Shown: one piece after another, positions 5,187 through 49,533 of the stretch
Layout: every line of letters starts with the position of its first letter
Position numbering within the stretch: the first letter of the stretch is position 1
Assembly (NCBI GenBank): GCA_965644295.1
Contig: CBFFRP010000405.1
Span: 62,001 to 126,000 of the forward strand
Reading direction: 5' to 3'
Source: Paraphysomonas bandaiensis
Taxonomy: Eukaryota; Protista; Chrysophyceae
DNA: 64,000 nt
The notes under the pieces: generated by a model
The model's input: only the letters and a program-made list of their open reading frames with translations
The model's database searches: none
Told to the model about the DNA's origin: nothing
Position numbers and translations under genes: made by a program

Positions 5187-5331
5187 TTGGGATGGTTGCA
5201 CCAAGGTGCTTGCAGCAATGCACAAGCAGTCCCGAGAAAACTCAGTATTTAGCAACTTTGATACCACTAGTCTAAAGTCGTAGATAGCTAAAAACAAAGT
5301 AGTTCTCTCATGTAATAATCAGATCTTTATA
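5187..5331 (+). mobile_element. 5'-truncated non-LTR retroposon 3' end (family A)
   Basis: 15-bp TSD tatagtactacacat at 5172-5186 and 5332-5346. Nearly identical to 11398-11541. Ends aataatcagatctt(ta)n. Confidence 0.9.
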
Positions 5332-5829
5332 TATAGTACTACACATATATTACAAAGTGCTATCTATACTTGCAAGCGATAATAAACTGAACTTCTGGTA
5401 CGTTTACATTGTGACATGGTACATATACATATATATGGTGCTACAAAAACTACAAACGTATTCAAAATTTATTTCATATATGCGACAACAACTGAAGAGT
5501 AAGTTTTGTTCTTTGAATATGCCTGAATATGCCTATTCTCTTCCCGGAGTCTTTTAATTTCATACTCCATCTCATCTCGGTCTCGTGAAATCTCTGCTTG
5601 TTGAAGCAGCATGATGTCTGCATACAAGGCCATTTTTATTTACTACTGCCACATGTCTGTGCCGCTTCTTCTTCCAATAATGTCACCGGGACATCGAGTT
5701 GTTGCTTGCATGAACCGATTCGCAATCTCGGTCGCAACTATAGTCACTGTCAGTTCCTGCAGTACGCATTACTCTTTCATTTAGCTTTGGAATAGCATTT
5801 GTTTGCATAAAATGCTTACTTCATTAAAC

Positions 5830-6476
5830 TAGTGTTATTAAAACTAGTATCCTACTATTTATCGCTACAGAGGCTGCTTGTGCGTTGCCGCAAGTACCAA
5901 TAGGCGACGACCTCCGTTTTTAATAGTAGATGGAAAGGGTTTGAGTAGGTCCTCAGGGTGTAGTGTTTTACCTAGTAGGTTATGCTTGGTCCGGCGAGTG
6001 GCACTTGGGGTATGGGTCTGTGCATCTAACTTAAGGGTCGGGGTTCAAGGTCGAGGTTTGAAGGATGGATGTGAGCATATTCCTAGGGTTAGCTGCGAAG
6101 TTTGTGAGTGTGATGCCATTTGTGGAGCTGAGTGTGGGGACGATGGTTGAAGGCGAAGGTGTAATTGACGAAGGCGCCGGCGTTTGTGTTATTAGGAAGT
6201 GACGCCAATGGATGTTGTGTTGGTGAATCTGGAGAGGAGTGGGGAGCTGGGCTTGGGTCTGCTTGTAGCCCCGAGTAATCGTAGTATAGGTGGGGCGGAC
6301 GCGTGTGCTTACGGACCGTGAGTGCAATCGCGTGACCGTGGTAAGCCTGAGTCGAGGAGTTTGCGGAGCTGTGGCAGTGTAGCGTTGACAGCGATCGCTA
6401 AGCATCCGTTTATCTGCAGCAAAGAGAGGTTGCAGGGTGATTACGTTCGCAGATTTAAATGTACGCAATTCTCGCA
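5830..6476 (-). mobile_element. LINE-like 3' fragment (family B)
   Basis: Low-complexity T/P/S/H-rich frame, a PKCHSPD variant motif (~5989-6009), then the shared 3' structured motif (5867-5917) and taaatagtaggat. Boundaries approximate. Confidence 0.65.
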
Positions 6477-6897
6477 CTTGAGGTGAGCCCATTCTCGGAT
6501 GCCTGATTATCAGTCAGAGCCCAATAATGTCTCTCTCTCTACACAAGAGTGACACTAATTTGTGTCCCTCTTATGGTACCGCACAAGCATTAAGCTAATG
6601 TGTGGGCAGAACTCACTATATATATACGGCTCGCGCTAGTTTCCCGGAGAAATATCTCCCATACTTATTCTCCAGAACACCACAAAAAGTTGCGCATCCG
6701 ACTTTGTTGAGGGGATGTCAGGTATATCAACATTCTCATTGAGTGATAGAGCAAAAGTGGTTACACGTCTTGGTGCTTGCAGTGACGCACAAGCAGCTTT
6801 CGTAGTTTTAAATAATAGGACATCAGATTTAAGCACAAGTTATTTAAATTGTTTTTGCCCTTTAAACGCCTACTATTGCTAATATTAAGATATTCAC
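6477..6897. mobile_element. SINE-like element copy with inverted 5' half
   Basis: 6477-6716 matches the element head on the - strand; 6714-6897 matches the tail on the + strand. Confidence 0.8.
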
Positions 6898-8553
6898 TTC
6901 GAAATCAGACATTACGTTACTTATTCTATATTGTGAACAACTATTTGCGTGGTCTTACCTTCTACTTTGAAGAAGCATCAATTCGTATTGAAGAGCAGTT
7001 GCCTCTTTACAAATCTGTTACAGCGACAACAATACACCTTTAAAAATCGACATCGTCTCAAAGAATGTACATAAATAGGTGGATATTCCTACAAAATGGA
7101 AGTTTGGACATCTTCTACATCCAGCCATTAGTTCTATATAACTTTCCAATCATAAGCACAGTGGTCCGTATGACACAATGCAAAGGTAGGGAAGTAAAAT
7201 TTTGTGAAGGGAATAATGGAAACATAAACTTTGAACTGGTTGCAGCTACTCTTAAATCGTAGTAAATATCGACATTATCTTCAAACGCACATTTGAGTCA
7301 ATCATTCAAAGAAATAGCAGATATTCGCACACACAGAAAGGCGAAAGGATTATCGTAATGTTCCTGTGGCAACAATACTACACACAGACAGGGGCAGGAC
7401 AACCGGGCGCTTTTGGCACTTAGGCATCCCTGTTGCGCCGTTCGAAATGTAGTGCTCCAAGATAAGATGAACAACTACATATTATCACCATCTTAATATA
7501 TATTTAAAGATAATATATTACTTAGGAATGTATATGCTACTTTTGATCCGTTTACATTTGACCCGCTGAATCAAAATATAGAGACGATTTTGTCAACTAA
7601 TCAAACTATTTGTTTTGAAAATTTGATCCGTTTTTGGAAGTCCTCCGTTAACAAATCTATAGTGTCACAATGGCTAAACTGCATCAGCACGTTCTCGCAT
7701 CATGCAGAATGTGTCTTTAGGCAAAAATACATCTTTTTAACGACGAAGATGTTTAAGGTTTATTGGTTGTGTAGTGTAAAATCAATGGTAATACCAAAGA
7801 AAAATAAACTGAAAAAAACGGCATCAGCAAACGGAGTGAGACGTACGAATCCCATACAACGCTTTTGATGTGTACATATATATACATACCATATGGTATA
7901 ACAAACGGACTACAGCTCACAAGTGTTGCTATACCCTCATTCATTTGCTGGTCCTTCGGTTTCAGTTTCTAAGCCAATCATATCGTAGACGAAAGCTGCC
8001 CATGCCAGCCGCAATGCTCATTGCCAGACTGACACATAGTTTACAGCATGGACATGGACTCTGCAGCCTCAGGATTCTACAAGTAGTTCGATATCTCTAA
8101 TTTATACTTGTGTCGTGTGGGACCTTATTGTCATATCGCATATAGTGGCGATGGCTCTGAGCACTTACAACTACATTTCCAACTTAGCGGAGAGATGCAA
8201 TAAAGTGAATAATGCCTTAATTGTAATTAAATTTCCTGTCGCATTACACAGCGAATATGTCGCGACGCCTGTGCTATGCGTACAAAAGAGGAGAGTGTAG
8301 CCAAGGGAGCTCTTGTCGTTTCTCTCATCGCTCAGGTATATCAGACAATTAGGAAAAGTAGTATTAATTATTTTTTACAGGTCAAAAGGAAACTGTTACT
8401 GTTACTTCGAGTAATGACAGTAAAGGACAAATAGAGGAAGCCCCAAAGCGCTCCACGAATGTCTCACTTGGTCGCCGCAGGAAGTGCTATAATTTTCTGT
8501 ATACAGGGGAATGTGCCCGGGGCGATTCTTGCAAATATGCGCACGATCTCGTC

Positions 8554-10275
8554 ATGGTGTCGGATACTCCACCAAAGCCTCGAGCATACATGTTATTGAT
8601 TACAGGATGTGGAATTTTGAGCCCCGAGAATTCCTCTTTTGAAAGCTTATTGATGAGCGGAGGCACAGGTGGCGAGCGTTCTAAAATATGGGATGATATT
8701 TCCTTCACGAAACATAACTTTAAATGGGGCATAGATGAGGTGGCTATACAAAAAATTATCACCGATCTTCGATGTGGTATCTATATGGGCGCCATTATAT
8801 GTGACTTGAGTTGCATGTCTACTCAAGAGCATGTGCGAATATTTCAAGACAAGTTAGAGCCAACTCTTAGGGCGTATGTTCACATGGGTGGATATGTTGC
8901 ATTCCCTACCTTCGAATTGGGAATGATAGTTGAGAATGTCAACCAGATGTTTGGCAGTGATTGGAGGTCTGGAGGTTTCTACAGTGCGCCCTGCCACCCC
9001 TGTGCAGAAAACATGGAAACATTTTCCTCTATATTCCCAGGGCATGAAAAAATGGAATATTGTCCGAAAGCGAATTATATTCGTAATGTACCTTTTGTAG
9101 AGCGCTGCATGGTCGTAAACGTTACGGACTGCTCATCTTCAATTTGCGATCCCGATGAAGCGAACGATGATGTCGTGGTGGCAGTGCATCGAAAGGGGCC
9201 TAACGGAGGTATGATTGCAGTATTTGGTGACGTCAATTTTGAGCCCGAAACTTGCCGTCTTGTGCATGATTTTGTGATGGGCCGCGCAGCCCTCGGTCCA
9301 GCTCCTGCTGCATTCGATTCGGACTTTGAGGAGCAACTCATGAACAGTCAGCGTCGAGGAATTTGTGGTTGGTGTATTAGACCGAATGCCACTGTCGGAT
9401 GCAAGTGCTGTCGTAGGGCCACGTACTGCGATGGGAGATGCCGTGACTTAGCTTCACCGGTAAGTACTGATTCCGAGGAGTGCGTTTTCGTTGTTCATAT
9501 ATGCCATTGCTATGTATAACACGTATGAGATAGTAGCTGTATGGTTGGTTAGAATACTCCAGTTATCGTTTTTCTCTGGATGCCTATTATACGAACTGGG
9601 TATTGTTATGTTATATATATGTTTCAGATGATTTTGCAATCCAATTCGCGTGATATTCCCTGTGCAGTTGTTCGATTTTCTTATGTTGTGTTTTGCTGTT
9701 GAATGGCACAGGTTCACAGACTAATTTGCGGCCGACGCATCGATATGATAGAAAGGGAATGGAGGATTATGCCATATTCTCACAGGCAGGGCCTGCAGCT
9801 GTACCCGGGATACCTCGATGCCGATGTAGCGTCATTGCTGGAGCGGTGTAGGCGACGGGCGGAGCATGCGTTCGATGCAATTACAGCCAATGATGTGGAT
9901 ACACTAAATGTTTGTCTAGAAATGATTGATGCCAATACCACTGCAGAAGAAGCAGGACTAGCTGATGTGGGCGGTCTACCGGTAGGAACCACTTTACTAG
10001 CTTATGCCGCACAGCAGGACAATAAAGTACATTTAATGAGTACTCTTCTGCACCGCGGCGCCAATCCAAATTTAGTTGATGCGCGGGGTCAGTCTGTATT
10101 CGAAAGCCTCAGAGACGTGTGGCGCCTTCAAGTTAGATTGAGTGGTATTCAGGCCGCTGTACAACTACTTAAGTCGTTCGGATACCGCTTGAGGCGAGGG
10201 GAAAAATGGGAAGACTTTTCATCCGTTGCGTATCCACAATCTTCTGGTTATATACCTTCATATGCATCTCATTAA
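8554..10275 (+). CDS. Two-exon protein: uncharacterised N-terminal alpha/beta domain + MYND zinc finger + ankyrin repeat
   Basis: Intron 9460-9711 (gtaagt...cacag) joins CGWC..CKCC..YC..C to VHRLIC in frame, completing a MYND finger. GTTLLAYAA...LLHRGANPNLVD is an ankyrin repeat. Confidence 0.85.
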
Positions 10276-10934: not shown

Positions 10935-11113
10935 GTGAATGTCTGATTATAAGCCATAGGTGTGTAAGAGTCAGAACTAATGTAGCAAATCAATTTATAT
11001 AACTAGTGCTTAACTCTGATATCCTACTATTTGGCGCTGCGAAAGCTGCATGTGCGCCACCGCCAGCACCAAGGTGCGACCACTTTTACTCAGTGAGCAA
11101 ACTCAGTGAGCAG
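10935..11113 (-). mobile_element. SINE-like element, tail fragment
   Basis: Shared 3' motif (11038-11086) plus the end ctcttacacacctat..ataatcagacattcac. Confidence 0.8.
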
Positions 11114-11179
11114 GTTACTATGCACCCTACAATTGTGAATAGTGAAGTCACATACAATCAATGCCTATATTCCATATCA

Positions 11180-11541
11180 ACGCGAACTCGCTCACAACGC
11201 AGGCCTGCAAATCCGGCCCGGATACAAACGACTCTCACCTTCAAACGAAACCCAGACACGACTGGAGCTCCCGGATCCTCTGTCACCGACCCACACCCAC
11301 GAATCAAAACCCCACCCTCCACATCCCGGACCACAAGTGGCTCCGGACCGGAGGAGACACTACCCAAAGGAAGACCACCGGATTAAGCCCAACACAAGGG
11401 ATGGTTGCACCAAGGTGCTTGCAGCAATGCACAAGCAGTCCCGAGAAAACTCAGTATTTAGCAACTTTGATGCATGAAATCGCCTAAAGTCGTAGATAGC
11501 TAAAAACAAAGTAGTTCTCTCATGTAATAATCAGATCTTTA
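11180..11541 (+). mobile_element. 5'-truncated LINE-like 3' end (family A), ORF ending TLPKGRPPD*
   Basis: 14-bp TSD tatattccatatca at 11166-11179 and 11542-11555. Stop at 11384-11386, followed by the structured 3' UTR. Confidence 0.9.
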
Positions 11542-11966
11542 TATATTCCATATCATAATTACGATAGATGATAGTTTCTGTTGAACCGAATATTGAAGTT
11601 GAATGTCAATACTTGTCCGGTGCTAACTTGAGCGTTCATTTGAACCCGATTCAGGTAAAAAGAATACTGTTTTGAGACAAAATGAGGATAATACTGTACT
11701 GCAATGACTTTGTAAACTAGCTTGTCATCAATAATATTATGTAATATATATCGTATAGTTTTTGTTTGATTCCTTTTAAACAGCAGTAACCACGACAAGA
11801 GCCGGTTGATACATTTCATAGCACTGAATACTCCCACACTATTACTTTTCAACGTAAAAGTTATCATGATTTAATGACAATAGCAACAACTACATAATAA
11901 TATGATAACAGAAAAAATCCTTCGTTGAAAAGTTAAATACTTTAACCTAGAAATCACTATTTCTCG

Positions 11967-12962
11967 TTAATTTTGAGATCCCGTTGAACTCTTGTCATTC
12001 ATATCATCTTCGTCTTCAAAAATACAGAATAGAGGATTCGATGTAGGTCTACTGTACACGCTCCCGTCTTTACGCTTTCGACATAGCAGCTTATCAATAG
12101 CAAAGTACAAAACCCATGTAAAATTGACTATTCCCAGCGACTCCACCGCTAGTGTCCACAGAACTAGCAAATAGCTTCCTGGGAGATTGAGAAATAAAAT
12201 ACTATTTTGCTGCGCGAGTAACTGAGGTGTCAACTGGGCAATTTGAAGGAGAATGAGGACTCCAGGTAAGCCGGCCGTCACCACAATAAAGTATAGACCG
12301 CCGGGGAAATTGTCACGATTCAGGTTTTCGAAGTGTGTGAGCGCAGCAATGAGGAAGCCGAGAGGGACTACTGTCAACTGCCGACCAAGAAGAAACTTTT
12401 TAACACCTTCGGACACGCTCGAATTGAGAAGCCTATGAATTTTATATGCAGTCGGGTAAGCCTTCATGTCTTCAGAATCTAAATGAGTGGTGCTCACCAC
12501 AGCCACCTTAAGCCCCTCACAATACGTTACAATTACAAGAGCCAAAAAGCCTAAAAAAAATTGAACTCCAACATTTATCTCCAGCATAGAGTGACCAGAT
12601 CCAATGCATCCTAGCACAAATACGATGCATAGAACAGTAAGTCCTGTGCTCAAAACATATCGTACATAGAGTAGGATGGTATCGATCATCCTAGCTGTCT
12701 GAACAGCCCCCTCGATGGCCACTTCACAGGCGCTGTCCTCAGTATCTTCCTCCTCGGAATATTCACACACTTCCTCCGTGCTTTTATGGCTTACCGACTC
12801 CGTGTCACTCAATTCCTTACCAGATAAGGGTGTAGGGTTACGAGAGGTACCAGCGAAGCATACCCGATTAACGATGCCATAAAACACATACACGAAGTGA
12901 ACTAGACCACACTGCTCAATAAGTAGTGCCAGATATAGTATCACGCACACAACAATCCCCAC
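11967..12962 (-). CDS. SIT: Silicon transporter (SIT family), 5'-incomplete: one full repeat plus the tail of a preceding repeat
   Basis: Motifs CEGLKVAV (EGxQ position), FLLGRQ, QLTPQLLA, ESLGIVN; several hydrophobic TM segments. No ATG at the ORF start. Confidence 0.85.
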   Translation of the reverse strand: MGIVVCVILYLALLIEQCGLVHFVYVFYGIVNRVCFAGTSRNPTPLSGKELSDTESVSHKSTEEVCEYSEEEDTEDSACEVAIEGAVQTARMIDTILLYVRYVLSTGLTVLCIVFVLGCIGSGHSMLEINVGVQFFLGFLALVIVTYCEGLKVAVVSTTHLDSEDMKAYPTAYKIHRLLNSSVSEGVKKFLLGRQLTVVPLGFLIAALTHFENLNRDNFPGGLYFIVVTAGLPGVLILLQIAQLTPQLLAQQNSILFLNLPGSYLLVLWTLAVESLGIVNFTWVLYFAIDKLLCRKRKDGSVYSRPTSNPLFCIFEDEDDMNDKSSTGSQN

Positions 12963-15580: not shown

Positions 15581-15810
15581 CTGAAGTCAGCAGATGTCAA
15601 GTATATCAACATTATGCTTGCTCACTGCGTTTGCTTTGAGTGATAGAGCGAAAGTGGCTGCGTGGCTGCACCATGGTGCTTGCGGCAATGCACAAGCAGC
15701 ATTCGTAGTGTTAAATAGTAGGATATCACAGTTAAGCACTAGTTACTTAAATTGCAATGCTACATTAGTTTTGACTGTTACACGCCAATTGGTAAAAATA
15801 AAATATTCAC
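15581..15810 (+). mobile_element. SINE-like element, 5'-truncated
   Basis: Collinear with 32310-32554 and 6714-6897; contains the shared 3' motif at 15648-15706. Confidence 0.8.
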
Positions 15811-18057: not shown

Positions 18058-18429
18058 GTACTTAGCGCTGTTGATCTGTCAGAAGAGAGCCTCAGTCCTG
18101 ACAAAAAGAATGGTTCAAACGGCCTTTGCGAGAATATAAGCGTAGTGTTAGAGAACACAAATTTACAAGTGTGAAAGCGTTGGAGGAAGGCCTCGTAGAT
18201 AAGACAAAGCTGACGATAAGAGAATGGAAGGTGCTTTTCCTTTTCAATAAGGACCTCTTCCACTCTCTTATCGTCAGCTTTGTCTTATGTACGAGGCCTT
18301 CCTCCAACGCTTTCACACTTGTAAATTTGTGTTCTCTAACACTACGCTTATATTCTCGCAAAGGCCGTTTGAACCATTCTTTTCGTCAGGACTGAGGCTC
18401 TCTTCTGACAGATCAACAGCGCGAAGTAC
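18058..18429. repeat. Long inverted repeat, ~173-bp arms, 26-nt spacer
   Basis: 18058-18230 is the reverse complement of 18257-18429 with about 4 mismatches. An extra outer 22-bp pair lies at 18031-18052 and 18477-18498. Confidence 0.97.
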
Positions 18430-25908: not shown

Positions 25909-26423
25909 AATGTATATATGTGATATTATAATTATAAAGTACTTTAGACTTATAGGTAAGTTGAACGCGACCAACAACAAATAGTACAGTCTGATTTACA
26001 TATTACCGGATGTAAACTTATTGATTTGCTTTCGTACGAATGAACTGAAGTTGTCGTTATCTAGACCTTAATAGAAAGGTTTAGGTATATTGGTACTGAT
26101 TGTTCTACTGTGAGGAACAAAAGCTTTGACGTAAATGTCATACATGAAATACGTTTTCCCAGTGCAGTACATACGTACATACTCATTGGGCTGAAGTATC
26201 TGCACATAAAAAAATGTCTTCATTTCGTATAATACAGTAAGAGGTAAGAAAGCAGTAATCAGTCAAAGGAATTCTATACTCTATGTCATCAACGTTTCAG
26301 CTTTACTCTCATCAGTACGTTGCCTCCGAACAGAACGGATTATACCTACCGAGGATATTCTTGTCGATACACTCATCAGACCCCTCTTTGATTCCTTAAA
26401 TCGTGAACCAACTACCAGCTACA

Positions 26424-26743
26424 TGTTGACTAATGACCATTTTCAGATGATTAAGATCGTTGTAAGAGAAGTTTAAGTTAGTCAAACTAGATAGATTACT
26501 TTATTATGATTGTATACACAATTGTGTGTGTTGTCATGTAACACATGTCAACAACATGATAAATTATTTCGTTCATGTCAACCACTGCTCAACTTCCGTA
26601 TCTTGAATCGTCATGATATAATACTTCAGTTTCACAGTTATAGCTATATAGCACCTTTGACTATTGACTACGTATTACTGTTTTTCACATTGTATTTAAC
26701 GTATTCTACAGTACTATCTTAGAGAACCATACGTATTCCAACA
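26424..26743 (-). repeat. 3' LTR of Copia-2
   Basis: Direct repeat of 31585-31904, no differences seen by eye. Confidence 0.97.
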
Positions 26744-29900: not shown

Positions 29901-31601
29901 AAACGAAACTCTCGTAATCTTTGATCTGGCACATATGCTACAGAGACAAGATTTTTTTAATGCAGTCTTCGATAGGTGCTTCCTCTGCAGATTTGAGCCA
30001 GTGAACAACATCCTTCTATGTGCCTCCGTTAGAGCCCCTTTGTTGAAATGGCCCATTCTCCTATGCAGCAGTTCCAGCTCGTCCTCACCAGTCCTATCGC
30101 TAAGATTTACTTCACAATTACTCGGTGTAGACACATCTGGAAGCTCCAACAGCTGCTGAGTTGGAACTGCAGTCATTCCATTCTTCATGGGTCCCTCCAG
30201 TACCAGCTCACCGGTATTACAGTCATAAATTTGGATCCCATACCACACCGTGAATCGATAGCCCATTTCGTTCAGCTTACGTCCGGAGCACAGGCATCGA
30301 TTGATCTGATCTGAAATTTCTATGTCTCTCCATGCTCCACGGGAACCCACACTTGTGATATGAATCTCTGATCCCTTCTTAGATCCGTTTATCACCTTTG
30401 ATGTATTCATATGAGTGTCAAGCATGGTCACATCATTCATTAAGAACATTGATGATGAACAGCATGTATCTATGTATGTATAGTGTTCAGCAGTACCAAT
30501 CATACAACATGTGTCACTTTTATCATATATATCAACAGCGCAGTCATAAAGCATATTCGCTTCGGACTCCGAGTCAGACTCGGTTCCTCCTCTGCGGATA
30601 TTCTCGAATGTGAAAACCTTCCCAGATTTCTGGGGTTTCTTGGTCTTTCCAGTCGAATTTCGGGGACATTCGTTCGCGCGATGGTTTTTGGATTTGCATA
30701 CTCTGCATCCTGTATATTCCTTACTGCCCGGTCTTTGTCCCTTCGTTTCCCCCTTTTTCTTCCTACATTGTTCTGTATTATGATTGTGTATTATACCTTT
30801 CTTCGAGCAATAAGTGCACTTCCTCTTTGTAGATACTCTCTCTTTCTTTCGAGGCTTTTCAATATGATTCAGCTCCTCCGTGCTCTTGCGCTTCTTCTCT
30901 ATGATTTTCCTCCCATACTTGGTGTCGTCGAACTGTTCGATACGTTTGGATAGCAATTCATATGGTACATCATCGGGCATTAAATACAGGGCATAATTCA
31001 AACCGTCATATTCATCACTGATAATTCCCTCCTTCAGCCTACTAATTTTTGATTCTTCCGTTACCGTTTGGTTATGCGCCTGAAGTTCACGAAGAAGCAG
31101 CTCAAAACGCAGTACATACTCTTTCGCGGTCTCCCCTGGCTTCATCTCGAATGATCCAAACTGAGCAAGCAGAGCACTAATCTTGTTTTGTGTTCCCCCT
31201 TCAAAACACGATTTAAGAGTGCTAACCATCTCTCTGGCGCTGAACTTATTAACTCTTCCTTCAGCTGCCTTGAACTCCTTGTGCTTCAGATGAAACTTCT
31301 GCAGCGCCTTCGGAGATCGCTTCACCGCCTCTCTGCAGTATGAGTAAGCAATTGCATTCGCCTTCCAATACTTGTCCACCGCTTCTTTGTAGGACTTGGT
31401 CTCAAGACTATTCAGGGGTTGAATTCCGAAATCCTCTTCCTCTGGTGGCCTTTCTAGAGCCACCTCACTCTGCTCCTTTCTCATAAGGAACGTCTCAAAG
31501 TCTTCGATCCATTGTTCAACGTTGCTCTCGTCGAACCATGGAACATCAGCTCTATCCTCCTTCTCTCCTCCGCATTCGCTACCATGTTGACTAATGACCA
31601 T
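26910..31601 (-). CDS. Copia gag-pol single-ORF polyprotein (1563 aa from ATG 31601)
   Basis: Uninterrupted ORF with zinc knuckles, PR (YIDTCCS), IN (HHCC, DDE), RT (YVDD) and RNase H (FSDADWAGD). Confidence 0.96.
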   Translation of the reverse strand: MVISQHGSECGGEKEDRADVPWFDESNVEQWIEDFETFLMRKEQSEVALERPPEEEDFGIQPLNSLETKSYKEAVDKYWKANAIAYSYCREAVKRSPKALQKFHLKHKEFKAAEGRVNKFSAREMVSTLKSCFEGGTQNKISALLAQFGSFEMKPGETAKEYVLRFELLLRELQAHNQTVTEESKISRLKEGIISDEYDGLNYALYLMPDDVPYELLSKRIEQFDDTKYGRKIIEKKRKSTEELNHIEKPRKKERVSTKRKCTYCSKKGIIHNHNTEQCRKKKGETKGQRPGSKEYTGCRVCKSKNHRANECPRNSTGKTKKPQKSGKVFTFENIRRGGTESDSESEANMLYDCAVDIYDKSDTCCMIGTAEHYTYIDTCCSSSMFLMNDVTMLDTHMNTSKVINGSKKGSEIHITSVGSRGAWRDIEISDQINRCLCSGRKLNEMGYRFTVWYGIQIYDCNTGELVLEGPMKNGMTAVPTQQLLELPDVSTPSNCEVNLSDRTGEDELELLHRRMGHFNKGALTEAHRRMLFTGSNLQRKHLSKTALKKSCLCSICARSKITRVSFHTKEDTDVKPDISADVQVFLNTPARGDERYVIKLTHHPSRMFWVKGVNQRTKEEVIQFFREVFEGEIRQYKLRVDHYHADGAGELINQELRSYLRSQGCYKHTWSSTDSPEMNAVEERKFRTASEMALAMLLQSGLPVPFWLDAYHAARYTLIRLPTRTDRGYMSPYEYVTGQPPSLKYFRVWGCKTYILTPKADRRKDWDDKSKIGYLVGYSEDKVGYQVYLPATDKVITCVHILTDESIPSRTEEYYAEIDALRVRTAPRPKTVNDYQHLVKTFHIDDEDGLLYKTTRVVERKGVIVGYRSLVTAGRTHIEQKVPIHIEDVQVMTRNTPGYTGYTGTRDASSTTDGRSTSTIPAPESHQEQLVNHGIIQGAPDEDMTQGVLDEDAAQGVPEYTDTINSNSTNTLQRVSKRDAEKRKRLRRRLANASVLGEINMIEVMDADVNVMDSEESTENKHVHEPNSFLEAERSPQADEWRTARRIEKKALLRRGVLKIVRRPSGVKLIRCKYVHKLKRDILGNIQKYKARLVALGNLQEKTEEEPSTFAPVVKGITIRLVIAIAFMFHMHVHQLDVSSAFCYANLDEDVYMYPPPDEELSNGWCFKLIKALYGLRASPRQWNRHIDKFIKSMQFRSCVLDTCLYYRWHQGKLTLLLLYVDDIIIASVDFEFLVFVKNKFCQTFEMRDMGECQSFLNIRITRGEDWFKLDQSKYAEKVIQKFNHVMGNSRKNKEAPLPSNAQELLAAERELTSEQEEWVSKFPYRSIIGAILYLALHTRPDLAYAIGLLSRYSSNPTYASCRLAIHLLKYLRGTTSKGIKFSGSKFDLHVFSDADWAGDILTRRSTTGYIVFLCAGAIAWQSKLQTTVATSSMESEYMAEYAAMQELVWLRGVLRELGLALTKPTPFFMDSKSAKDLSENPVYHKRSKHIQIKYHWVREHVNGRFPTARLIHVSTKDMAADIFTKALSTKLFKLHEETITGEKRSISNEVEKNQKKRFKKG
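31577..31584 (-). promoter_or_regulatory. Primer binding site TGGTAGCG (initiator tRNA-Met-like)
   Basis: Immediately after the LTR; same first 8 nt as the yeast Ty1 PBS. tRNA identity is inferred. Confidence 0.7.
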
Positions 31602-31904
31602 TTTCAGATGATTAAGATCGTTGTAAGAGAAGTTTAAGTTAGTCAAACTAGATAGATTACTTTATTATGATTGTATACACAATTGTGTGTGTTGTCATGT
31701 AACACATGTCAACAACATGATAAATTATTTCGTTCATGTCAACCACTGCTCAACTTCCGTATCTTGAATCGTCATGATATAATACTTCAGTTTCACAGTT
31801 ATAGCTATATAGCACCTTTGACTATTGACTACGTATTACTGTTTTTCACATTGTATTTAACGTATTCTACAGTACTATCTTAGAGAACCATACGTATTCC
31901 AACA
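31585..31904 (-). repeat. 5' LTR of Copia-2
   Basis: Direct repeat of 26424-26743, followed by the PBS. Confidence 0.97.
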
Positions 31905-32093: not shown

Positions 32094-32176
32094 CCCTCAA
32101 CAAAGTGGAACTCGCACGTTTTCGTGGTGTTCTGTGGGAGTACCGGAGATATTTCTCCGGGAAACTAATGTGAGCC
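32094..32176 (+). ncRNA. Candidate HDV-like ribozyme (head copy)
   Basis: P2 ctcgc/gtgag, L3 ttttcgt, P4 ccggaga/tctccgg, J4/2 aCtaa (C at 32165). P3 has one mismatch in this copy. Confidence 0.5.
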
Positions 32177-32554
32177 GCACACATACTCAGCAGATAACAT
32201 AGCCAAATGCTTGTGTGGTACAAGGGACACTAATATTATGTAGAAAATACACAGTCACCCGGAAATGGGCCCACCTCAAGGGCATCCGGGAAGTTCACCT
32301 TAAAGCCTCAGGTGTAAGGTATATTAACATTCTGCTTCCTCACGGCATTTGCTTTGAGTGATTGAGCGAAGTTGGTTGCACCTTGGTGCTTGCGGAAAGG
32401 TACAATCAGCTCCTGTAGCGTTAAATAGGGTAGGCTAATAGAGTTTGTACCTGTTAGTGACAGGTAGACGTCTATATAGCTTGACTAGTTTTCATCTAGC
32501 TACTAGGCTGGTGCTGATTCTTAACACCGATATTGCTAATAATAAGACTATCAA
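32094..32554 (+). mobile_element. Full-length SINE-like element (ribozyme-like head + shared 3' motif)
   Basis: 12-bp TSD taacaatttcta / taaaaatttcta (32082-32093, 32555-32566); homologous to the other copies. Confidence 0.88.
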
Positions 32555-32966
32555 TAAAAATTTCTAGAATTATGATTAATATAAACGCATAGTAGGTTAA
32601 CGGCAAAGTGAAAAATATAAAGCTAATAATTAAAAATTATCAACTAAAATGACATATTTGGATAGTTAAAATCTTAATTAACTGAACGTTGTATTAAGTC
32701 AATGCTCAATTATTCGAATTATAGTCAACACCCCTCATCATTCATTGATACTCGCTACAATTATATTCTCTCAACTACCAATCAATACTATCAGATCTTA
32801 GGTAGGCATAATCTTATACAGTCAAACTATTTCAGTTTATCTAATATACAGGGGCTCCGGCAACTGCGCGTAAGAATAAGAAAACAAAAAGTATTGCACT
32901 TACATTTATCTTTTTATGTACACTTTTTATGCTCATGAGGCACAACTAATTCAATTATACAGAATA

Positions 32967-36931: not shown

Positions 36932-37456
36932 ACGTGTAAGCAATGAGCTACTAAATTGAAATAATCTAATAAATATCTACGCTAATGTTCTACTATTTAG
37001 CGCTACGAAACTATTTGTGTGTTGCCGCAAGCACCAAGGTGCAACCATCTTCGCTCTATTACTCAATGCAAACGCAGTGAGCAGGCAGAATGACATAGAT
37101 GCTGACTTCAGGAATTTTGAATCGGGATGCTTTACTTCAGCAGACAGCCCAATACCCCTGATGCCCTTGAGGTGAGCTCATTTCCGGATGCTTGACTTAA
37201 GAAGGCAACCCAATACCCCGGATACCCTTCAGGTGGGCCCATTACAGGATGCCTATTTATTTGTCAAAAAGGCCCAATGATGTCTACACAAGTGACAATT
37301 ATTTGTGCCCCATTTACCACACAAGCATTAGGCTATGAGTAGACAGAACAATATCTGCTGACTATATATGCGGCTCACGTTAGTTTCCCGGAGAATGTCT
37401 CTGGTACTTATCCCCCAGAACACCACGAAAAGATGCGAGTCCGACTTTGTGAGGGG
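36932..37456 (-). mobile_element. Near full-length SINE-like element with internal 61-bp tandem repeat
   Basis: Head 37372-37456, 3' motif 37005-37054, repeat phase ggatgc at 37125, 37186 and 37247. Confidence 0.85.
37372..37456 (-). ncRNA. Candidate HDV-like ribozyme (head copy)
   Basis: P2 ctcgc/gtgag, P3 atc/ggt, L3 ttttcgt, P4 hairpin, J4/2 aCtaa. Confidence 0.55.
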
Positions 37457-38416: not shown

Positions 38417-39729
38417 TTAGTTCCTTATCAAACCCATTGTCGTCGACAACGAAAGGCTATTAGTTTTACGGTCTTTAGCGTGTTCTCTATACACTGGTGC
38501 AGTATACGTATAATTGTCAAGAATGGTTTGAACTTCCTCAGATATTACATATGCACGCTCCATGTTTTCGGCAAGAGTGCAAACGGAAAAGTGGTGCCGG
38601 ATGCATTCCCCCACGACAGATACATTTATAATCATAGGCGATTTTGCGCGCTTCCGAATCACCGCTTCCACACTATCCTTTAGAACATCGAAAAAAGGGT
38701 GTTTACTGAGAGAACGACTTTGCACAGACATCCCTAGCCTCAGGGGTATCCGTACATCCAATAGCCCATGTATGATATTTCGGAATTCGGAAGTGACAGG
38801 AACATTGCAAGGGGTAACAGATGGAACAAAAACAACGAGATCTGACGGGAGAGAGGCGTTACTTACTACCGTCTCAGCTACTTCTTCAAGAGCACCATCA
38901 GCATCATCAAATGATATCTTTGTCACATTTGCAGAGGTGGAAGTGTAATCAGTTAAGTATCGACTTGAGTTCCATATGTGGCTATACTTTTCTTCCACGA
39001 AAGTCACAAATGATTTCGGGCAGTGTCGCTGGAATGGACGATACATAAACAACATCTCAAACATCACCACACCAAGACTCCAGAAATCACTCTCAAAACT
39101 ATGTTGATGTGTGCTAGTCAAGACCTCTGGGGCTAGGTAGCTGAAGGTACCACTAGTGAGGGTACAAACCATTCCACTAGAAGTGCTGTCATTACAGTGT
39201 GCTACTCCGAAATCAGTTAGACGTGGATACCCTTCGCCGTCAAGCAAAATATTCTCGGGTTTGATATCTAGTAAAAACGATTAAATTCACGTAGGATGGA
39301 TACATATAAACTCTTACCCCTATGAATAACACCAAACGAATGAATGTGATGTAACGCTGATGTCAAACATATAGCTATAAAGGCAACACGCTCCTCATTG
39401 AAGTGAAAATTAGAATTAAGGTGACACCGCAGATCCCCGCCTTCTAACAAGTCAAGTACTAACACGCAGTTGGTATAGTCATGATATGAAAAGTGAAGGT
39501 TACACAAAAAAGGATGGTGTGTAATTCTTTTCAATGCTTTCAACTCCCCTCTCAGCATATCTGCTCCTCCTGATCGCATCAGACACTTCTTGATATTAAT
39601 AATCTTTGATGCAAAGTCTAATTGCTGAGGCTTGTATATCGTTCTCTTCACAACTGCAAATGACCCTTCACCTATCATCTCGGCCATCGTGAACTCGCTC
39701 TTTGCTGAGCATGAGGAACCCGAGCCCAT
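38417..39729 (-). CDS. AGC-group Ser/Thr kinase (STK32/YANK-like), 2 exons, predicted N-myristoylation
   Basis: MGSGSS, GEGSFAVV, HR|DIKPEN split by a ~50-nt intron, DFG, YLAPE, DFWSLG. Confidence 0.93.
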
Positions 39730-42897: not shown

Positions 42898-43801
42898 CTA
42901 GAGCCTTGGTTAAAATGTATTAAAACACGTATATTAATTTGGGAGATGTTTTATATGTAACGAAACAAATCCGTTAATTATTGCAACAGTATCAGTAGAA
43001 GAACTCACGAATTGCTATGTTCTCATACACCGACACTTATTTACGTGGTACACAAGCAGTATTTATGACGTAGTATGACTCACTACTAGCTAGTACAAAA
43101 ATATCGATTTTCGGGGTATATACTTAAAATGATTAATCCTAATACTTAAATATTTTAGTTCATCATATCACCACATTAATTCCACACAATAAAGCATTTG
43201 ACTGATGTAATCATCACTAACGGTTATGAACCAATAAATCCTACATTAGCAACATATGTTATTGTGAAACTTTAAATATTAGTTATCGTGGTCGTGGATA
43301 TGTACTTCAGGCCTGGTAAATTCCATAGGTCTGCATTAACAAAGCATTTTTCAGTATAAGGTTTTTTTGGAATGATGTAGACATGTCATCTGTTGATTGA
43401 TATATATATTATATATATATTTATTTACACTATTGGCACACAGGTATCTCACATGTAGAGAATTACAAATACGCATACTGATGTATTGAATATGTTAGAG
43501 AAATAACAGTTTACTCTCTAATAATCTAAGTCAAAATGATAAGGACACTGTAACAGCTTCGTATAGAGCAATAAAACTAAAGCATGGAGGCTGTATAGCA
43601 TCCCTCCTCAAGTACTGTACCTGCGGATATTTAGCTCATTTTTATACCAATTTCCACTATATCTGTACAGACTATGATGGGTATGAAAAAAGATATTATT
43701 TCCATCATTGATCTATGACGGTGCATGCTTGTGTTATATGAGAGTAGCCTTAAATATAATAGTGTTGAATATTCTGTCTATTACACATGTGGTGAGTAGT
43801 A

Positions 43802-44190
43802 GTGAATGACTTATTATTAGCAATAGGCGTGTAAGAGTCAACGCTTAACTCTGATACCCTAATATTTAACGCTACGAAAGCAGCTTGTGCGTCACAGCAA
43901 GCACCAAGGTGCAATCACTTACACTCTCTGTCCTTAGGTGAACTAGCCCGAATGCTTGACTTTAGCAGACAATCCAATACCCCGGATACCCTTGAGGTGG
44001 GCCCAAAGACGTCTACACAAGTGACACTTATATTTGTGTCCCTTGTATCACACAAGCATTTGGCTATATGAGTGGGCAGAAGAATATCTGCTGACTATAT
44101 ATGCGGCTCACGTTAGTTTCCCGGAGAAATGTCTCTGGTACTTATCCCCCAGAACACCACGAAAAGGTGCAAGCCCGACTTTATTGAGAG
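43802..44190 (-). mobile_element. Full-length SINE-like element (short variant)
   Basis: 18-bp TSD cacatgtggtga(g/a)tagta at 43784-43801 and 44191-44208; head and tail both present. Confidence 0.92.
44105..44190 (-). ncRNA. Candidate HDV-like ribozyme (best-paired copy)
   Basis: P2 ggcttgc/gtgagcc, P3 acc/ggt, L3 ttttcgt, P4 ccagaga/tctccgg, candidate catalytic C at 44116. Confidence 0.6.
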
Positions 44191-45005
44191 CACATGTGGT
44201 GAATAGTACACAAGACTGCCCTTTTGCTGACGATTTAGATGATAAACGGACTCGACGAGTGAATATACTTATCTAAAGAAAGCAGATGCAAGTTGTACGG
44301 CCAGAGAACTTCTAAGCCTTCCAGTTTCCGTCGTGTGATCGATGATAAGAATCAAAATATATCAGAATACTTTCATGGTGCCGTCTCGTTCATTGATAAT
44401 GCACTTATGTCTAATATACACAGCACAAGCAGTTGAGAAGAATACTCGCTTATTCGTATGGAACAAAACCAAATAAATTTCTCAATACCAGTCGAACAAT
44501 TGTGCCAGCATGGCTAACGAAAAGTAAAGACTTAGGACTTAGATGATGATGAGGGTATACTATATGTCTATTTGTCTAGACTCAAAGACCAAGAGTATGT
44601 CCTAATCAGGTTTTTGTGGATCAATTACAATTATTTAGCAATCAAAACCTGCTATTAGAAGCACCTCTAGGACCGTATAGCTTTTCTAATACTTGATCTG
44701 TTTGAACGAGCCAAAACCAAGTACAAAAGGCTGGACTTAGTACTAGTCAACATCACATCTCAACGGTTGCAACACACACCTATACTTCATAAACTACACT
44801 TCATACATCTACTAGATACTATAGACTAATTTAATACACTAGTCCCTCTACGACATTTCTGTAAGTTGCCAATTCATTTGTCAACAGCCACTAAAATTAT
44901 TAAGTAATAAATCCATACTGTGATAAGCTATTCGTGAGAAAAACATACAAATATGTCGGCAACGATTTGCAGTCGGTCTCACGTAGAAAATAGAGTATGA
45001 TAAGC

Positions 45006-45788
45006 TTAAATCTTGTTCATAGATGCCACAGTGACACTCTGCACGTAATCCTCCATGGCCTCAATATTATCAGTGACATCATCCAGGAGGACCAGACTAT
45101 CAACTATAGTGCAGGTCATGACAAGCTTTTTAATTCCGAACGCAACGGGCTCGAGCTTGTAAGTAGCACCCCACTGCAGGCCCTCCTGCTCGTACTTGAT
45201 GATCTCCTTCCACACAGCCTCCAAGTCACAGTCAGCCTCCCATGGCTTCACGTCAAGCACAATGAGAGATTTCTCGACAGGCTTAGGTTTGTCCTTCTTG
45301 ACCTTTCCTTCCCTGGCATCCTTCTCCTCCTTGAGTCGCTTGGCAAGAGCCATTCTCTCCTGTCTAGCTTTGTTCGCAGCACGCTCCTCCTCGGTCTCGT
45401 CATCGTCGCCGAACATATCATCGAAGTCAGCTTCGGCAGCCTTGGGGGCAGGCTTTTTCTCCTCTTCATCACCAAACATGTCATCAAAATCATCATTGAC
45501 CTTCTTAGGGGCTGCGGAAGCACCAGAGCAAGATCCGCTGAAAGTAATGCTGTAATAACCTTATCAGACAACTAAAAACAGGAATGTATAGATCACGTAC
45601 TTGTTTAATCCAACAAGGGCAATAACGTGGATAGCCCAACGGTAGGCATTGGGGAAGGAGGCCTTGTCGGGAATACCAGAAAGGGCAGAGAGGGCAGCCT
45701 TGTCGGCATCGCTCAGGGAGAATCCCTTCACGTAAGACCTGGTGGCCAAATGACGTTCCAAATCACCAACGTTCTTGAAAGTAGACAT
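45006..45788 (-). CDS. EEF1B: Translation elongation factor 1-beta (eEF1B), 2 exons
   Basis: N-terminal HLATRSYVKG..RW; C-terminal KSLIVLDVKPWE..WGA..LEPVAFGIKKL..VQSVTVASMNKI; intron ~45538-45600. Confidence 0.97.
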
Positions 45789-46790: not shown

Positions 46791-46821
46791 TTTCTTCTAA
46801 TTCATGTGTTCTCCTGTTACA

Positions 46822-47157: not shown

Positions 47158-47435
47158 CAGTTCTGCGTGCCCAAGAAGCGTGAATTGATCCGCTAGTACG
47201 AAGTGCCCTATCTGCAAGTATTAATAACTGAGTCTCTCTCTTGTATACATAGTGTCAAGGCAACAACGAATAATAATGGATATAAACTATTGTTTACTAC
47301 CTTTAAGAATCAGAGCTAATTTAGCATTGTAACTTAACTAAGAGGTGCTTGACTCTGATATTCTACATTTAGCGCTACACGAAAGCTGCTCCTGCGTCAC
47401 CACAAGCATCAAGGTGAAATCACTTTTGCTCTATC

Positions 47436-47510
47436 GCAGATGTTAGTTATATCAACATTCTGTTCGCAAACGCAGTGAGCGAACAGAATGTTGATATAAC
47501 TAACATCTGC
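47436..47510. repeat. Perfect 32-bp inverted repeat, 11-nt loop
   Basis: 47436-47467 is the exact reverse complement of 47479-47510. Confidence 0.97.
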
Positions 47511-47513
47511 CCA

Positions 47514-49189
47514 TATATATATTGAATGTCTGATTATTTAGCAATAGGCGTTGAAAGCCTGCACCAATTAGTGGCTAGAAGAATGCTAGTCATACTAGTT
47601 AGACTACTACCCGTAACTAATCAATACAAACTCTTTTATCCTACTATTTAACGCTACAGAAGCTGCTTGTGCGTCGCCGCAAGCACCAAGGTGCAACCAC
47701 TTCCGTTCTTAGTGTGTGTTATGAGGCTCGCCATGATCGTGTGTCCTGGGACTCACCGGCGCGTGTGATCTGGAGGTCTCCTCTTGGGATGAGACTCCAC
47801 TCGCTATATGATAGATAGCCTTATGTACCTCACGGGGACTGACTTATTAGCCTTATGGCAGTTAGGGGAAACAGTAATATGCCCTTCTGAGATTGGCGAT
47901 CTGGTGGCCTTCCTTTAGGCATTGTTCCAAGTGGCTCGGAGGTATGTGGATGAAGGTCTTGCAAAAGGTTATGGCCTACTGTGAAGAAGCGTCGAAATCG
48001 GCTCTTTTGCTGTCTTAGCCAGCGGTAGAGAACACATGCAAGAGGGTGTATAGCTGTACAGGGGTGGGATGTGAGGGTCATCCGGTGTGTCCAGCTACAG
48101 GGAGTCGAGAGGGAGTGTGATGGTGCAAGAGAGGCAACATCTGATTGAGGAGAGTGAGACTGCGCAACAGAACAAGAGTCACTGAGGTCGAGTACTCTGA
48201 TAGACCTATGCACGAGATGATCGTGATGATGATGATGGTCTGGAGGAGACACTCGGACGTCCTCAGCTGCTCTTGTTAGTGTCTGTGTTGGTGCAGGGGG
48301 GTACAGACTGAGGTATAGAGAGTGTGTGTAAGGAAGATGACGGCAAGGTATCAGAGACGAAGGGAGGGGAGATAGTTTGTCTGGGGGTTTTCTAGGAGGA
48401 GGTAGAGTGTACTGTGTGTGTGTATGACACTGCAGTGATGATATGAGTGTGTTGGACAGAGAGAGAGAGCTGGTGATGTGTCCAGCAGTACAGGTAGACA
48501 GGTACATGGACATGGTGATGTGTCCAACAGCAGTAGAGGTATACACGGAATGGTATACATCCTGTAGGACACAGTAGTACAGTAGTCGAGTATACCGTAT
48601 GCGGAATACAGTGTCTATCCAATGAGATGGATGGGCTGTGGGGGTGATAGGTGAACAGGGTGAGGGGGTAGCCTGCTGGGTGGATGGACCACAGACAAAC
48701 CATGTTGGGTTGGGCTGGGTTGTCGTCAGGAGACGGCCCTGTTGTGCAGTGGAGAGGTGTCGAGAGGAGACAGGGGTTGCAGAGAAGGTACATGGGGGCC
48801 GTTTGCGTGGATCTGCTCGCACGAGCCATGCTGTAAGTGGTTGTATCCGTAGAGAACCGTGTAGGAGACGAAGGTGTCTCCTTAGGTGATAGCATATGCA
48901 TGCGGTCAGCGCTGCATTGGTGCAGGCACGTTGTTTAACTGAAGTAGTTGAGTAGGGTGAAGGTTGCAAGGCCAGGCAGGGGGGCTTGGAGCGTGTACAA
49001 CATGGTGTGACAGGTAATTTGTCGGAAGCGTGGTGGTCAACAAAATGCAGCAGTAAGGGAGTGTAAAAGGCCCTGGGCACACTGATGTGACTCAGCCACG
49101 GTGTCAATAGAGACATTGGGCTTGGAGCTGGTTAATAGGGTGAAACTTTATGTTGGACTGTATTTGCCATCGTAGGGCAGAGAATTATA
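47514..49189 (-). mobile_element. 1.68-kb 5'-truncated LINE-like 3' end (family B)
   Basis: 13-bp TSD taacatctgccca (47501-47513, 49190-49202); long low-complexity ORF with PRKPPD, PKGRPPD and PKRRPPD; 3' motif 47656-47706; ends aataatcagacattcaa(ta)n. Confidence 0.88.
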
Positions 49190-49317
49190 TAACATCTGCC
49201 CACTTCAGAATTTTTGAGTCCTTAAGGTGAACAGCCCGGATGCTTGACTTCAGTAGGCAGCCCTAAACCCCCCATATGCCCTTGAGCAGGGCTGCGTACC
49301 AATTAATTGATTTTCAA

Positions 49318-49533
49318 CCATGGCACAGGCCCGCCAGACACATTGCCCAAAGGTAGACCCCCCGACTAACCTCAATACAAGGGACGGTTGCACCATGGTG
49401 CTCGCAGCGATGCTCAAGCAGTCCCGAGACGTTTGCCCGCCACTAGTAGTATTTAGCAAATCTAGTTATTACTGTAGTTAGTCTATAGATATAAACTAGT
49501 TTCTGTACACAACCGCTCTCATGTAATAATCAA
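49318..49533 (+). mobile_element. 5'-truncated LINE-like 3' end (family A variant), ORF ending TLPKGRPPD*
   Basis: 13-bp TSD aattgattttcaa (49305-49317, 49534-49546); ends ctctcatgtaataatc. Confidence 0.88.

Follow-up and report, generated by a model that had tools for sequence, protein, structure and literature searches.

A folded RNA module shared by the 3' tails of a chrysophyte LINE lineage and its non-autonomous partners, a candidate handle for reverse transcription

The window (the whole stretch of DNA that was analysed, 64 kb) holds twelve copies of an RNA motif, a fold of roughly 50 bases, in the 3' tails of LINEs and of short non-coding partner elements carried by a marine stramenopile protist. 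Our main reading, which we give a probability of about 0.6, is that one LINE lineage carries the motif in its 3' tails as a structured RNA module, shared with non-autonomous elements as a handle for the reverse transcriptase (RT). The same module and the same terminal block TAATAATCAGA in both kinds of element, the target-site duplications (TSDs) and the paired tail fit a LINE and its partners. LINEs and non-autonomous partners sharing a 3' tail are a known arrangement, of which this is a new example.

Motif copies in the window

We searched both strands of the whole window, with no filters, using a covariance model trained on the window's own motif copies. All twelve copies listed by an earlier sequence-only reading were found in their places at 58.6–86.8 bits, and nothing further scored above the 11 bits of the next-best match (Table 1). 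The pattern GGTTGCACCNNGGTG, with up to two mismatches, had 9 matches where 0.78 were expected by chance. As that reading had counted, 11 of the 12 copies have a GNRA loop, the exception being GUGG in the copy at 11038 on the reverse strand. The distance from the end of the motif to the 3' end of the element had been put at about 90–140 nt and measures 76–142 nt.

Related copies are very many, with thousands of contig pieces matching the stretch. Contigs of the E5 type were found in a polyA metatranscriptome whose bins for the adjacent single-copy intergenic DNA are empty. An MMETSP-type transcriptome sample that includes an exact copy of one window gene also yielded LINE tail contigs bearing the motif.

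Table 1. Motif copies and the elements that carry them (positions in the window).
Feature	Position	Strand	Details
Motif, LINE family A1	5182–5240	+	66.3 bits; 94.6% identity to 11398–11546; element 5'-truncated immediately upstream of motif
Motif, family B variant	5863–5921	-	63.7 bits; outer stem ACGGAGGU/GCCUCUGU; P2 re-formed in a different register (GCC-UAUU-GGU); MFE fold a three-way junction with 3-bp P2
Motif, family C, decayed	6747–6807	+	67.8 bits; P2 with 2-nt insertion
Motif, family C, decayed	11035–11093	-	69.6 bits; loop GUGG
Motif, LINE family A1	11393–11449	+	68.8 bits; outer stem GGGAU/GUCCC; loops CAAG and GCAA; MFE fold a three-way junction
Motif, family C	15644–15710	+	67.4 bits; 8-nt tandem duplication GTGGCTGC in the 5' strand (alignment)
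Motif, family C, in E4	32362–32420	+	61.4 bits
Motif, family C, in E2	37001–37058	-	68 bits
Motif, family C, in E3	43870–43928	-	70.9 bits
Motif, family C, decayed	47375–47433	-	58.6 bits
Motif, non-autonomous family B, in E5 (2.4 kb)	47652–47710	-	86.8 bits; outer stem ACGGAAGU/GCUUCUGU; loops CUUG and GCGA; MFE fold a three-way junction
Motif, LINE family A3	49376–49432	+	64.3 bits; outer stem GGGAC/GUCCC; loops CAUG and GCGA
5'-truncated LINE copy (A1)	5187–5331	+	TSD TATAGTACTACACAT at 5172–5186 and 5332–5346
5'-truncated LINE copy (A1)	11180–11541	+	TSD TATATTCCATATCA at 11166–11179 and 11542–11555; 97.8% identity to external LINE contig L035
5'-truncated LINE copy (A3), nested in E5	49318–49533	+	TSD AATTGATTTTCAA at 49305–49317 and 49534–49546
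Element E1: head, ~550-nt body, motif	5815–6714	-	3' end uncertain
Full-length element E4	32094–32558	+	weak 8-bp TSD AATTTCTA
Element E2	36950–37456	-	5' end sharp; 3' end decayed, uncertain
Full-length element E3: 5' head, motif, terminal block	43796–44190	-	12-bp TSD TCACCACATGTG at 44191–44202 and 43784–43795
Element E5	47520–49898	-	head 49727–49898, nested A3 copy, ORF, motif, terminal block TAAATAATCAGACATTCA (47523–47540)

The LINE

In three motif copies (family A) the surrounding element is a non-LTR retrotransposon reduced to its 3' end by 5' truncation, at a different point in each, and flanked by perfect TSDs of 13–15 bp (15, 14 and 13 bp). In the copy at 11180–11541 the remnant of the ORF ends in LPKGRPPD* at 11363–11386, and is followed by the motif and then by the terminal block GTAATAATCAGATCTTTATA (11522–11541). 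The 5' part of the copy nested in E5 is 95% identical to the end of the external contig L036. The outer stem begins 12 nt downstream of the stop codons at 11384–11386 and 49366–49368, just as had been claimed, and across five LINE subfamilies this spacing is 9–13 nt. The ORF end LPKGRPPD* is retained in five subfamilies through synonymous third-position changes, so it is real coding sequence.

External contigs (L035, L036, L038, L039 and L041–L044) carry the ORF further, into a region that resembles RNase H and the RT thumb. The motif and the terminal block TAATAATCAGA occur in L035, L038, L039 and L041–L044 as they do in the family A copies in the window. A 291-aa piece of the ORF has RNase_H clusters as its Atlas neighbours (feature score 0.94, the ten best matches all of the same family), and the Atlas structure neighbour of a 448-aa piece is a non-LTR RVT_1+RNase_H cluster, at a TM of 0.56. 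There is a faint match to zf-RVT; Pfam and PDB sequence searches of the ORF gave no significant RNase H or RT match, and the AlphaFold model of the protein (pLDDT 40) is too poor for use. The best explanation is that the protein of these LINEs combines an RNase H-like domain with a conserved C-terminal domain whose last residues are LPKGRPPD. The earlier reading of these copies as LINE 3' ends holds in that the motif follows the ORF, in the 3' UTR of a non-LTR element with TSDs, truncation and an RNase H-like region. The RT catalytic domain and the endonuclease were not seen in contigs that end at the RT-thumb-like region.

The non-autonomous elements

The remaining nine copies belong to non-coding or junk-ORF derivatives (families B and C), which have a common 5' head beginning CTCAACAAAGTCGG, the motif and the terminal block TAATAATCAGA; apart from the motif, that block is all they have in common with the LINE. 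The ends of E3 are marked by many contigs with dissimilar flanks, which break at 44188 and 43797/43798. The body of E1 has a 153-aa ORF of no known family. E5 has a junk-like ORF of 428 aa (47830–49116) with relics of PKGRPPD-coding sequence, and in contigs from both DNA and RNA runs 47709 is joined to 49221; these are short E5 forms without the body.

These elements had been called SINE-like. They are indeed short, non-autonomous and motif-sharing, but we rejected a classical SINE identity: ARAGORN found no tRNA-like sequence in the window and Rfam no 7SL, 5S or tRNA match there, and the head is not tRNA-like. They look more like deletion derivatives of a LINE 3' end.

Fold and covariation

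The predicted helices are an outer helix P1, P2 (GCAC-CNNG-GUGC) and P3 (UGCR-GNRA-YGCA). The outer helix truly covaries, with pairing kept while the sequence is free. It has seven haplotypes, every one paired, and 7 of its pairs have changes on both sides; those quoted in the sequence-only reading were correct and all pair, and a further one, CCGGAAC/GUUCCGG, comes from the LINE of contig L039, at a protein identity of 45%. Among 18 distinct sequences, 89% of the outer-helix cells are paired, against 27–47% with the partners slid. In the same set the covariation score was 0.319 against 0.203 in shuffles and was matched by 0 of 500 shuffles, although the independent lineages behind it are few, about seven.

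Covariation is restricted to the outer helix and the loop-closing pair. With so little variation in P1b, P2 and P3, the three-way junction remains a prediction, whose geometry is suggested by conservation and folding energy. The earlier description of a covarying three-way junction is therefore right for the outer helix, whereas the inner helices show conservation and predicted energy only. The UGCA/UGCG covariation of the inner stem and the variation of the loop, which it also described, are present but weak as evidence: the changes from GCGA to GCAA or GUGA, and of the closing pair from G-C to A-U, are each a product of CpG transition, and such transitions retain GNRA and pairing almost automatically.

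Run on 11 and on 20 sequences, RNAalifold each time arrived independently at the three-way junction, which is also the MFE fold of every intact family A or B copy that we folded, five in all. Single-sequence folding energies are unexceptional (z from -1.6 to +1.5). A competing fold, with a long hairpin GCUUG...CAAGC, has an equal covariation score.

Other readings of the motif

One alternative is that the motif is a functional RNA structure that serves another step, such as forming the 3' end of the transcript or stabilising it, exporting it from the nucleus, or coupling the end of translation to the loading of the nascent protein. Coupling to termination would suit a module that begins only 9–13 nt past the stop codon, a spacing that is fixed in five LINE subfamilies, and the conservation and outer-helix covariation are compatible with any function at the RNA level. 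However, the non-autonomous elements retain the module with no ORF before it, so a termination-coupled role is not the whole story, and in the known paradigm the RT handle is what partners must share in order to be copied (PMC4176376). We consider this alternative unlikely.

Common descent alone, under weak or absent selection on a GC-rich motif in young copies, would be enough if the short elements are simply deletion derivatives of the LINE 3' end. Families B and C descend from that end, as the PKGRPPD relics in E5 indicate, so part of the motif sharing is common descent. The contig joints that reveal short forms as E5 minus its body, the inner helices without compensatory changes, and the GNRA and R-Y variation that CpG transitions can explain all point the same way. 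Against it, the core is about 90% identical while the flanks are unalignable, both between LINEs whose proteins share 45% identity and between the LINE and families B and C; L039 and the other LINE, for example, share 32 of 35 core bases and the rest of their UTRs cannot be aligned. At least six double changes in the outer helix preserve pairing, with G-U intermediates, whereas unpaired changes do occur in decayed family C copies, which is how neutral decay would look. On balance we think it improbable that descent accounts for the motif by itself.

We give very little credence to a DNA-level or opposite-strand role (a protein-binding site, a promoter or an antisense ORF): in 7 of the 12 copies an open antisense frame reading ...FNATKAACASPQAPRCNH... 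crosses the motif, but such ORFs are short, differ in their ends and match no family, the outer-stem swaps keep a pairing that neither a DNA site nor a peptide would require, and the conserved U-G pairs (at 20–58 in 15 of 18 sequences, at 23–55 in 14 of 18) would turn into A-C mismatches on the opposite strand, so the fold is specific to the sense RNA.

Proposed mechanism

By analogy with stringent-type LINEs, the most likely role of the motif is as a handle by which the LINE reverse transcriptase would choose its template. The tail of the element RNA would fold into a compact three-way junction of P1, P2 and P3, and the LINE-encoded protein would bind it. The 3' terminal block may then be positioned at the nicked target, and target-primed reverse transcription would follow, leaving target duplications of 12–15 bp and variable 5' truncation. 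Non-autonomous elements would be copied in trans by presenting the same handle. The sequence-only reading had proposed such an RT signal, reused by the non-autonomous element; the anatomy (3' UTR, TSDs, shared tail, no Rfam match) fits it, whereas recognition by the enzyme is argued from analogy.

Comparison with known systems

Rfam 15 gave no match to the motif copies, whether gathering thresholds or E<=10 was used, which agrees with the earlier remark that it was not recognised as a known RNA family. Covariance models in Rfam 15 for R2_retro_el, the hammerhead and other three-way-junction ribozymes had no match at the motif. The only R2_retro_el match in the window (26821–26910, 27.7 bits) is below threshold, lies inside a Copia element and is unrelated to the motif.

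In stringent-type LINEs the ORF2 protein binds a stem-loop in the element's own 3' tail, and SINEs carry the same stem-loop (PMC4176376, PMC1636434). As in eel UnaL2/UnaSINE1 and zebrafish ZfL2-1 and ZfL2-2 (PMC1636434, PMC4176376), a short conserved 3' module with stem and loop occurs here in a LINE and its non-autonomous partners. There is likewise no dependence on poly(A), and copies have TSDs and 5' truncation. The differences are that UnaL2 and ZfL2 have a single stem-loop, tails of short tandem repeats and a place in the vertebrate L2 clade, whereas here we predict a two-hairpin three-way junction, find a fixed terminal block TAATAATCAGA, and have a chrysophyte LINE with an RNase H-like domain. 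Unlike partners of the UnaSINE1 type, the non-autonomous elements here have no tRNA-derived head.

The R2 3' UTR RNA is bound by R2's own protein, which starts target-primed reverse transcription. It (RF00524) likewise comes from a non-LTR element and folds into several helices in the 3' UTR, but it has no sequence or structure match to our motif, and R2 is site-specific in rDNA whereas the elements here are dispersed. In trypanosomatids, the non-autonomous members of ingi/RIME and L1Tc/NARTc are deletion derivatives that keep both LINE ends and are copied in trans, and L1Tc and NARTc have a ribozyme-like 5' head. The likeness to our elements is that of an autonomous LINE with deletion-derived non-autonomous partners. 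We found no paper on transposable elements of chrysophyte-like stramenopiles.

Significance

Template choice by LINE proteins is understood in detail in just a few animal elements. The candidate handle described here is very short and sharply delimited, and one protist genome carries it both in several LINE lineages that have diverged and in a very large number of non-autonomous copies. The copy number gives covariation analysis unusual statistical power, and an RNA this compact is suited to experiments on binding, structure and trans-mobilisation. The partnership of LINE and non-autonomous element is now documented in chrysophyte-like stramenopiles, and the paradigm is unchanged.

More tentatively, and at somewhat under even odds, the motif may be an undescribed RNA family: a minimal three-way junction of about 45 nt with CNNG and GNRA tetraloops, a handle common to deeply diverged LINEs (down to 45% protein identity) and to thousands of parasitic retroposons. 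If this is true, and with a 5' head that may possibly be self-cleaving, the short elements would be minimal retrotransposition RNAs, with little beyond a processing signal and an RT handle.

Motif copies and database searches

The sequence-only reading had described twelve copies of an RNA motif in the window, and all twelve were found where it had placed them. A covariance model built from these copies and run unfiltered on both strands matched precisely the same twelve with 58.6-86.8 bits, while the next best match had 11 bits. Two of the copies have local duplications, which are listed in the table. The proposed search for a described family left the motif unmatched in Rfam 15, both at gathering thresholds and at E<=10, and this RNA is absent from all Rfam families. 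We rejected a hammerhead or other known ribozyme as its identity because there was no Rfam match and the junction has too few unpaired bases. Scans of viral_contigs and metagenome_contigs with the motif pattern gave chance matches only and no external copies; these matches lay within coding sequence, on contigs of 60-72% G+C, without the surrounding GGUUG or the outer stem. A literature search on transposable elements of the chrysophyte-like group found no paper.

Coordinates of the features in the window
Feature	Position	Strand	Remarks
Family A copies	5187-5331, 11180-11541, 49318-49533	+	common terminal block GTAATAATCAGA
LPKGRPPD ORF end	11363-11386, 49345-49368		sequence; also in L039, L042, L043, L044
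Common 5' head	32094-32280, 37270-37456, 44000-44190, 6480-6714, 49727-49898		starts sharply at CTCAACAAAGTCGG
E1, E2			further full-length elements
E3	43796-44190	-	full-length, 12-bp target-site duplication
E4	32094-32558		full-length
E5	47520-49898		full-length, nested family A copy inside
Motif copy	15644-15710		8-nt tandem duplication (GTGGCTGC twice) inside 5' strand, 15655-15670
Motif copy	47375-47433		preceded by inverted duplication, ~30 bp, of the sequence upstream of the copy, 47440-47510 (-), CAGATGTTAGTTATATCAACATTCTGTTCGC ... GCGAACAGAATGTTGATATAACTAACATCTG
Copia element	26422-31882		apparently intact; 329-bp LTRs, 99.7% identical; single 1578-aa gag-pol ORF
Copia relative	113-4018		diverged, truncated; 69-74% nt identity to the intact element
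Protein kinase domain	38417-39729	-	two adjoining ORFs (153 + 276 aa); intron or frameshift
SIT-like ORF	11967-12962	-	331 aa, half-size; covers only 218-425 of the 513-position silicon-transporter profile
Long hairpin	18158-18329	+	near-perfect
51-nt gap	45549-45601		ends CT..AC
Unannotated ORFs	44997-45575		17%-diverged paralogue also maps, 45006-45429

Family A and its ORF

The three family A copies share their 3' end, while each begins at a point of its own and lies between perfect direct repeats (15, 14 and 13 bp); because of this combination, we attribute them to target-primed reverse transcription with 5' truncation. That the ORF stops 12 nt upstream of the motif in family A was borne out, as the remnant ends with LPKGRPPD* at that distance from the outer stem. 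The codons of LPKGRPPD differ between subfamilies at third positions (GGA/GGT/GGG, CCA/CCC/CCT, GAT/GAC, CTA/TTG/TTA), so we consider this end to be real coding sequence. LINE lineages as far apart as 45% identity keep it, and their codon changes are synonymous.

A HMMER search with the 68-aa ORF remnant against 1.84 billion representatives led to one protein with 89% identity (P0003). Starting from this protein, further LINE contigs were recovered by looking up contigs and by two word-based searches. The external sequences used are short transcriptome and metagenome contigs only. L035 and L041 belong to subfamily A1, L038, L042 and L044 to A2, and L036 and L043 to A3, while L039 is a separate LINE lineage, only 45% identical in protein. 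L039 is a diverged LINE copy whose 3' end, at about 2520-2560, is immediately next to two telomere-like repeats (AACCCTAACCCTAA). We also looked up the Copia polyprotein by exact match to obtain further sequence of the same genome, and no record was returned. A protein closely related to that of the LINE has the source label Paraphysomonas, which is a silica-scaled chrysophyte. Together with the exact match of a window protein in an MMETSP sample (see Abundance and expression), this makes a Paraphysomonas-like stramenopile the likely host.

The LINE contigs encode a conserved C-terminal domain with a CX2CX8HX4C knuckle, for which there was a faint zf-RVT match (E=0.16), and an RNase H-like region farther upstream. 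Neither RNase H nor reverse transcriptase was found by sequence in the LINE ORF with Pfam at E<=10 or in PDB by phmmer and by profile. In the Atlas, a 291-aa LINE piece adjoins RNase_H clusters (0.94), with its best ten matches all in one family, and a 448-aa piece adjoins non-LTR RVT_1+RNase_H clusters (TM 0.55-0.56). For the RNase H-like part, the AlphaFold model reached a pLDDT of 40 and was too poor for use. The contigs end short of the reverse transcriptase catalytic domain itself, and the classification of family A as a LINE is well supported by its insertion signature and protein neighbours.

Non-autonomous elements

Self-comparison and alignment showed that the other nine copies are built alike: behind a sharp 5' end comes a middle part that varies, then the motif, and last a terminal block, either TAATAATAAGTCATTCA or TAAATAATCAGACATTCA, that is related to the family A block. 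One head, at 6477-6714, seemed wrongly oriented; this is resolved if 5863-5921 and 6747-6807 are taken as two separate head-to-head elements. Near 47790 and 47900, E5 contains two relics of the PKGRPPD-coding sequence outside their proper context. In contigs of both DNA and RNA runs, 47709 is followed immediately by 49221, giving short forms that are E5 minus its body. We did not find a tRNA-like head in the non-autonomous elements. From the shared anatomy, the relics, the short forms and the lack of such a head, the nine copies appear to be non-autonomous derivatives of the LINE 3' end with a head of their own. They were earlier described as SINE-like, but they are not classical SINEs. No Rfam ribozyme matched the common 5' head, and the consensus fold of four heads is a long helix in which covariation is absent.

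We also looked at a 428-aa ORF in E5 and rejected it as a real protein because it has no Pfam family, is of low complexity (P/S/T/H-rich), and differs from two relatives (96.3% nt, 93% aa identity) by about what neutral drift would give.

Predicted fold and covariation

RNAalifold gave the same fold with 11 and with 20 sequences. P1a is the outer helix of 5-8 bp, P1b is GUU paired with AGC, P2 is GCAC-CNNG-GUGC followed by one unpaired U, and P3 is UGCR-GNRA-YGCA, with CA unpaired. This is broadly the three-way junction drawn in the sequence-only reading, but a CNNG tetraloop describes its 2-nt loop better, and there is partial pairing between GGUUG and CAAGC. For each of the five intact copies of families A and B that were folded, the junction is the MFE structure, with weak z-scores (-0.1 to -1.6), while most of the decayed family C copies adopt other MFE folds.

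Across 18 distinct sequences, 89.4% of the cells are paired, against 27-47% when the partners are slid. The covariation score was 0.319, compared with 0.203 +/- 0.015 for shuffles, and none of the 500 shuffles reached it. Changes on both sides were seen in 8 pairs, which 24 of the 500 shuffles matched. The signal is confined to the outer helix and the loop-closing pair. As had been claimed, the outer stem swaps and stays paired: there are seven haplotypes, every one fully paired (GGGAU/GUCCC, GGGAC/GUCCC, CCGGAAC/GUUCCGG in L039, ACGGAAGU/GCUUCUGU, ACGGAGGU/GCCUCUGU, ACGGAAGU/GCUUUCGU in L033, and GCGAAAGU/GCUUUCGU), and those of families B and C are linked through G-U intermediates.

The arguments from inner-stem covariation and from the GNRA loop were less secure. 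The variants do occur, but the ancestral UGCG-GCGA-CGCA has three CpGs, and GCAA, GUGA, UGCA and the UGCA of the 3' strand are their transition products. CpG transitions suffice to explain them, so GNRA preservation and the UGCR/YGCA swap are weak evidence and we do not count them as independent support.

There is almost no variation in P1b, P2 and P3, and for this reason a long hairpin in which GCUUG pairs with CAAGC and 2 nt bulge out scores the same as the junction by pair counts. Two observations alone speak for the junction over this hairpin: L039, and the copy at 5863-5921 with its rebuilt P2 (GCC-UAUU-GGU).

Abundance and expression

At 80% likeness, two DNA runs placed 6,541 and 29,266 contig pieces on a 5.7-kb stretch. 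The summed word depth of the motif bin exceeded that of single-copy bins nearby by a factor of ~6,000 to 10,000; such a depth does not equal copy number, and we say only that the motif-bearing elements have very many copies. A polyA metatranscriptome contains near-identical E5 contigs (for example 47681-48306 with one difference), and nearby single-copy intergenic bins are empty. An 824-aa protein of the window has an exact match in a JGI sample with the source label MMETSP, and L038 and L044, which are motif-bearing LINE tail contigs, come from the same transcriptome-type sample as this exact gene.

Other features of the window

The window is nuclear eukaryotic DNA with 42% G+C. Besides LTR elements of the Copia type, it contains genes for cation efflux, a kinase and an LRR protein, together with a fragment of a silicon transporter. 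The long hairpin scored 52.5 bits with the plant MIR1888 model (E=6e-8), which is below the gathering score of 72, and is probably an inverted-repeat element and not a MIR1888 miRNA. The 51-nt gap is skipped in RNA-type runs X8 and X13 and retained in DNA runs; it is a minus-strand intron with GT..AG ends, in the same region as the unannotated ORFs.

Role of the motif

Pairs of LINEs and non-autonomous elements with a common structured 3' tail are already well known. In stringent-type LINEs, ORF2 binds a stem-loop in the element's own 3' tail, a tail that partner SINEs also carry (PMC4176376, PMC1636434). By analogy with these, the motif is most likely what the LINE reverse transcriptase uses as a handle. 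A rival is that it serves a different role at the RNA level; the analogy is what favours the handle. The motif could also be shared through common descent without selection. Between family A1 and the L039 lineage, 32 of the 35 core bases are identical and the UTR outside the core is unalignable, terminal block excepted; family A compared with families B and C gives the same picture. Action at the DNA level or in antisense is a further rival, and the fold is sense-strand-specific because of conserved U-G pairs. If the motif is the handle, the LINE reverse transcriptase would grip it in the tails of both kinds of element, and priming would take place at the terminal block.
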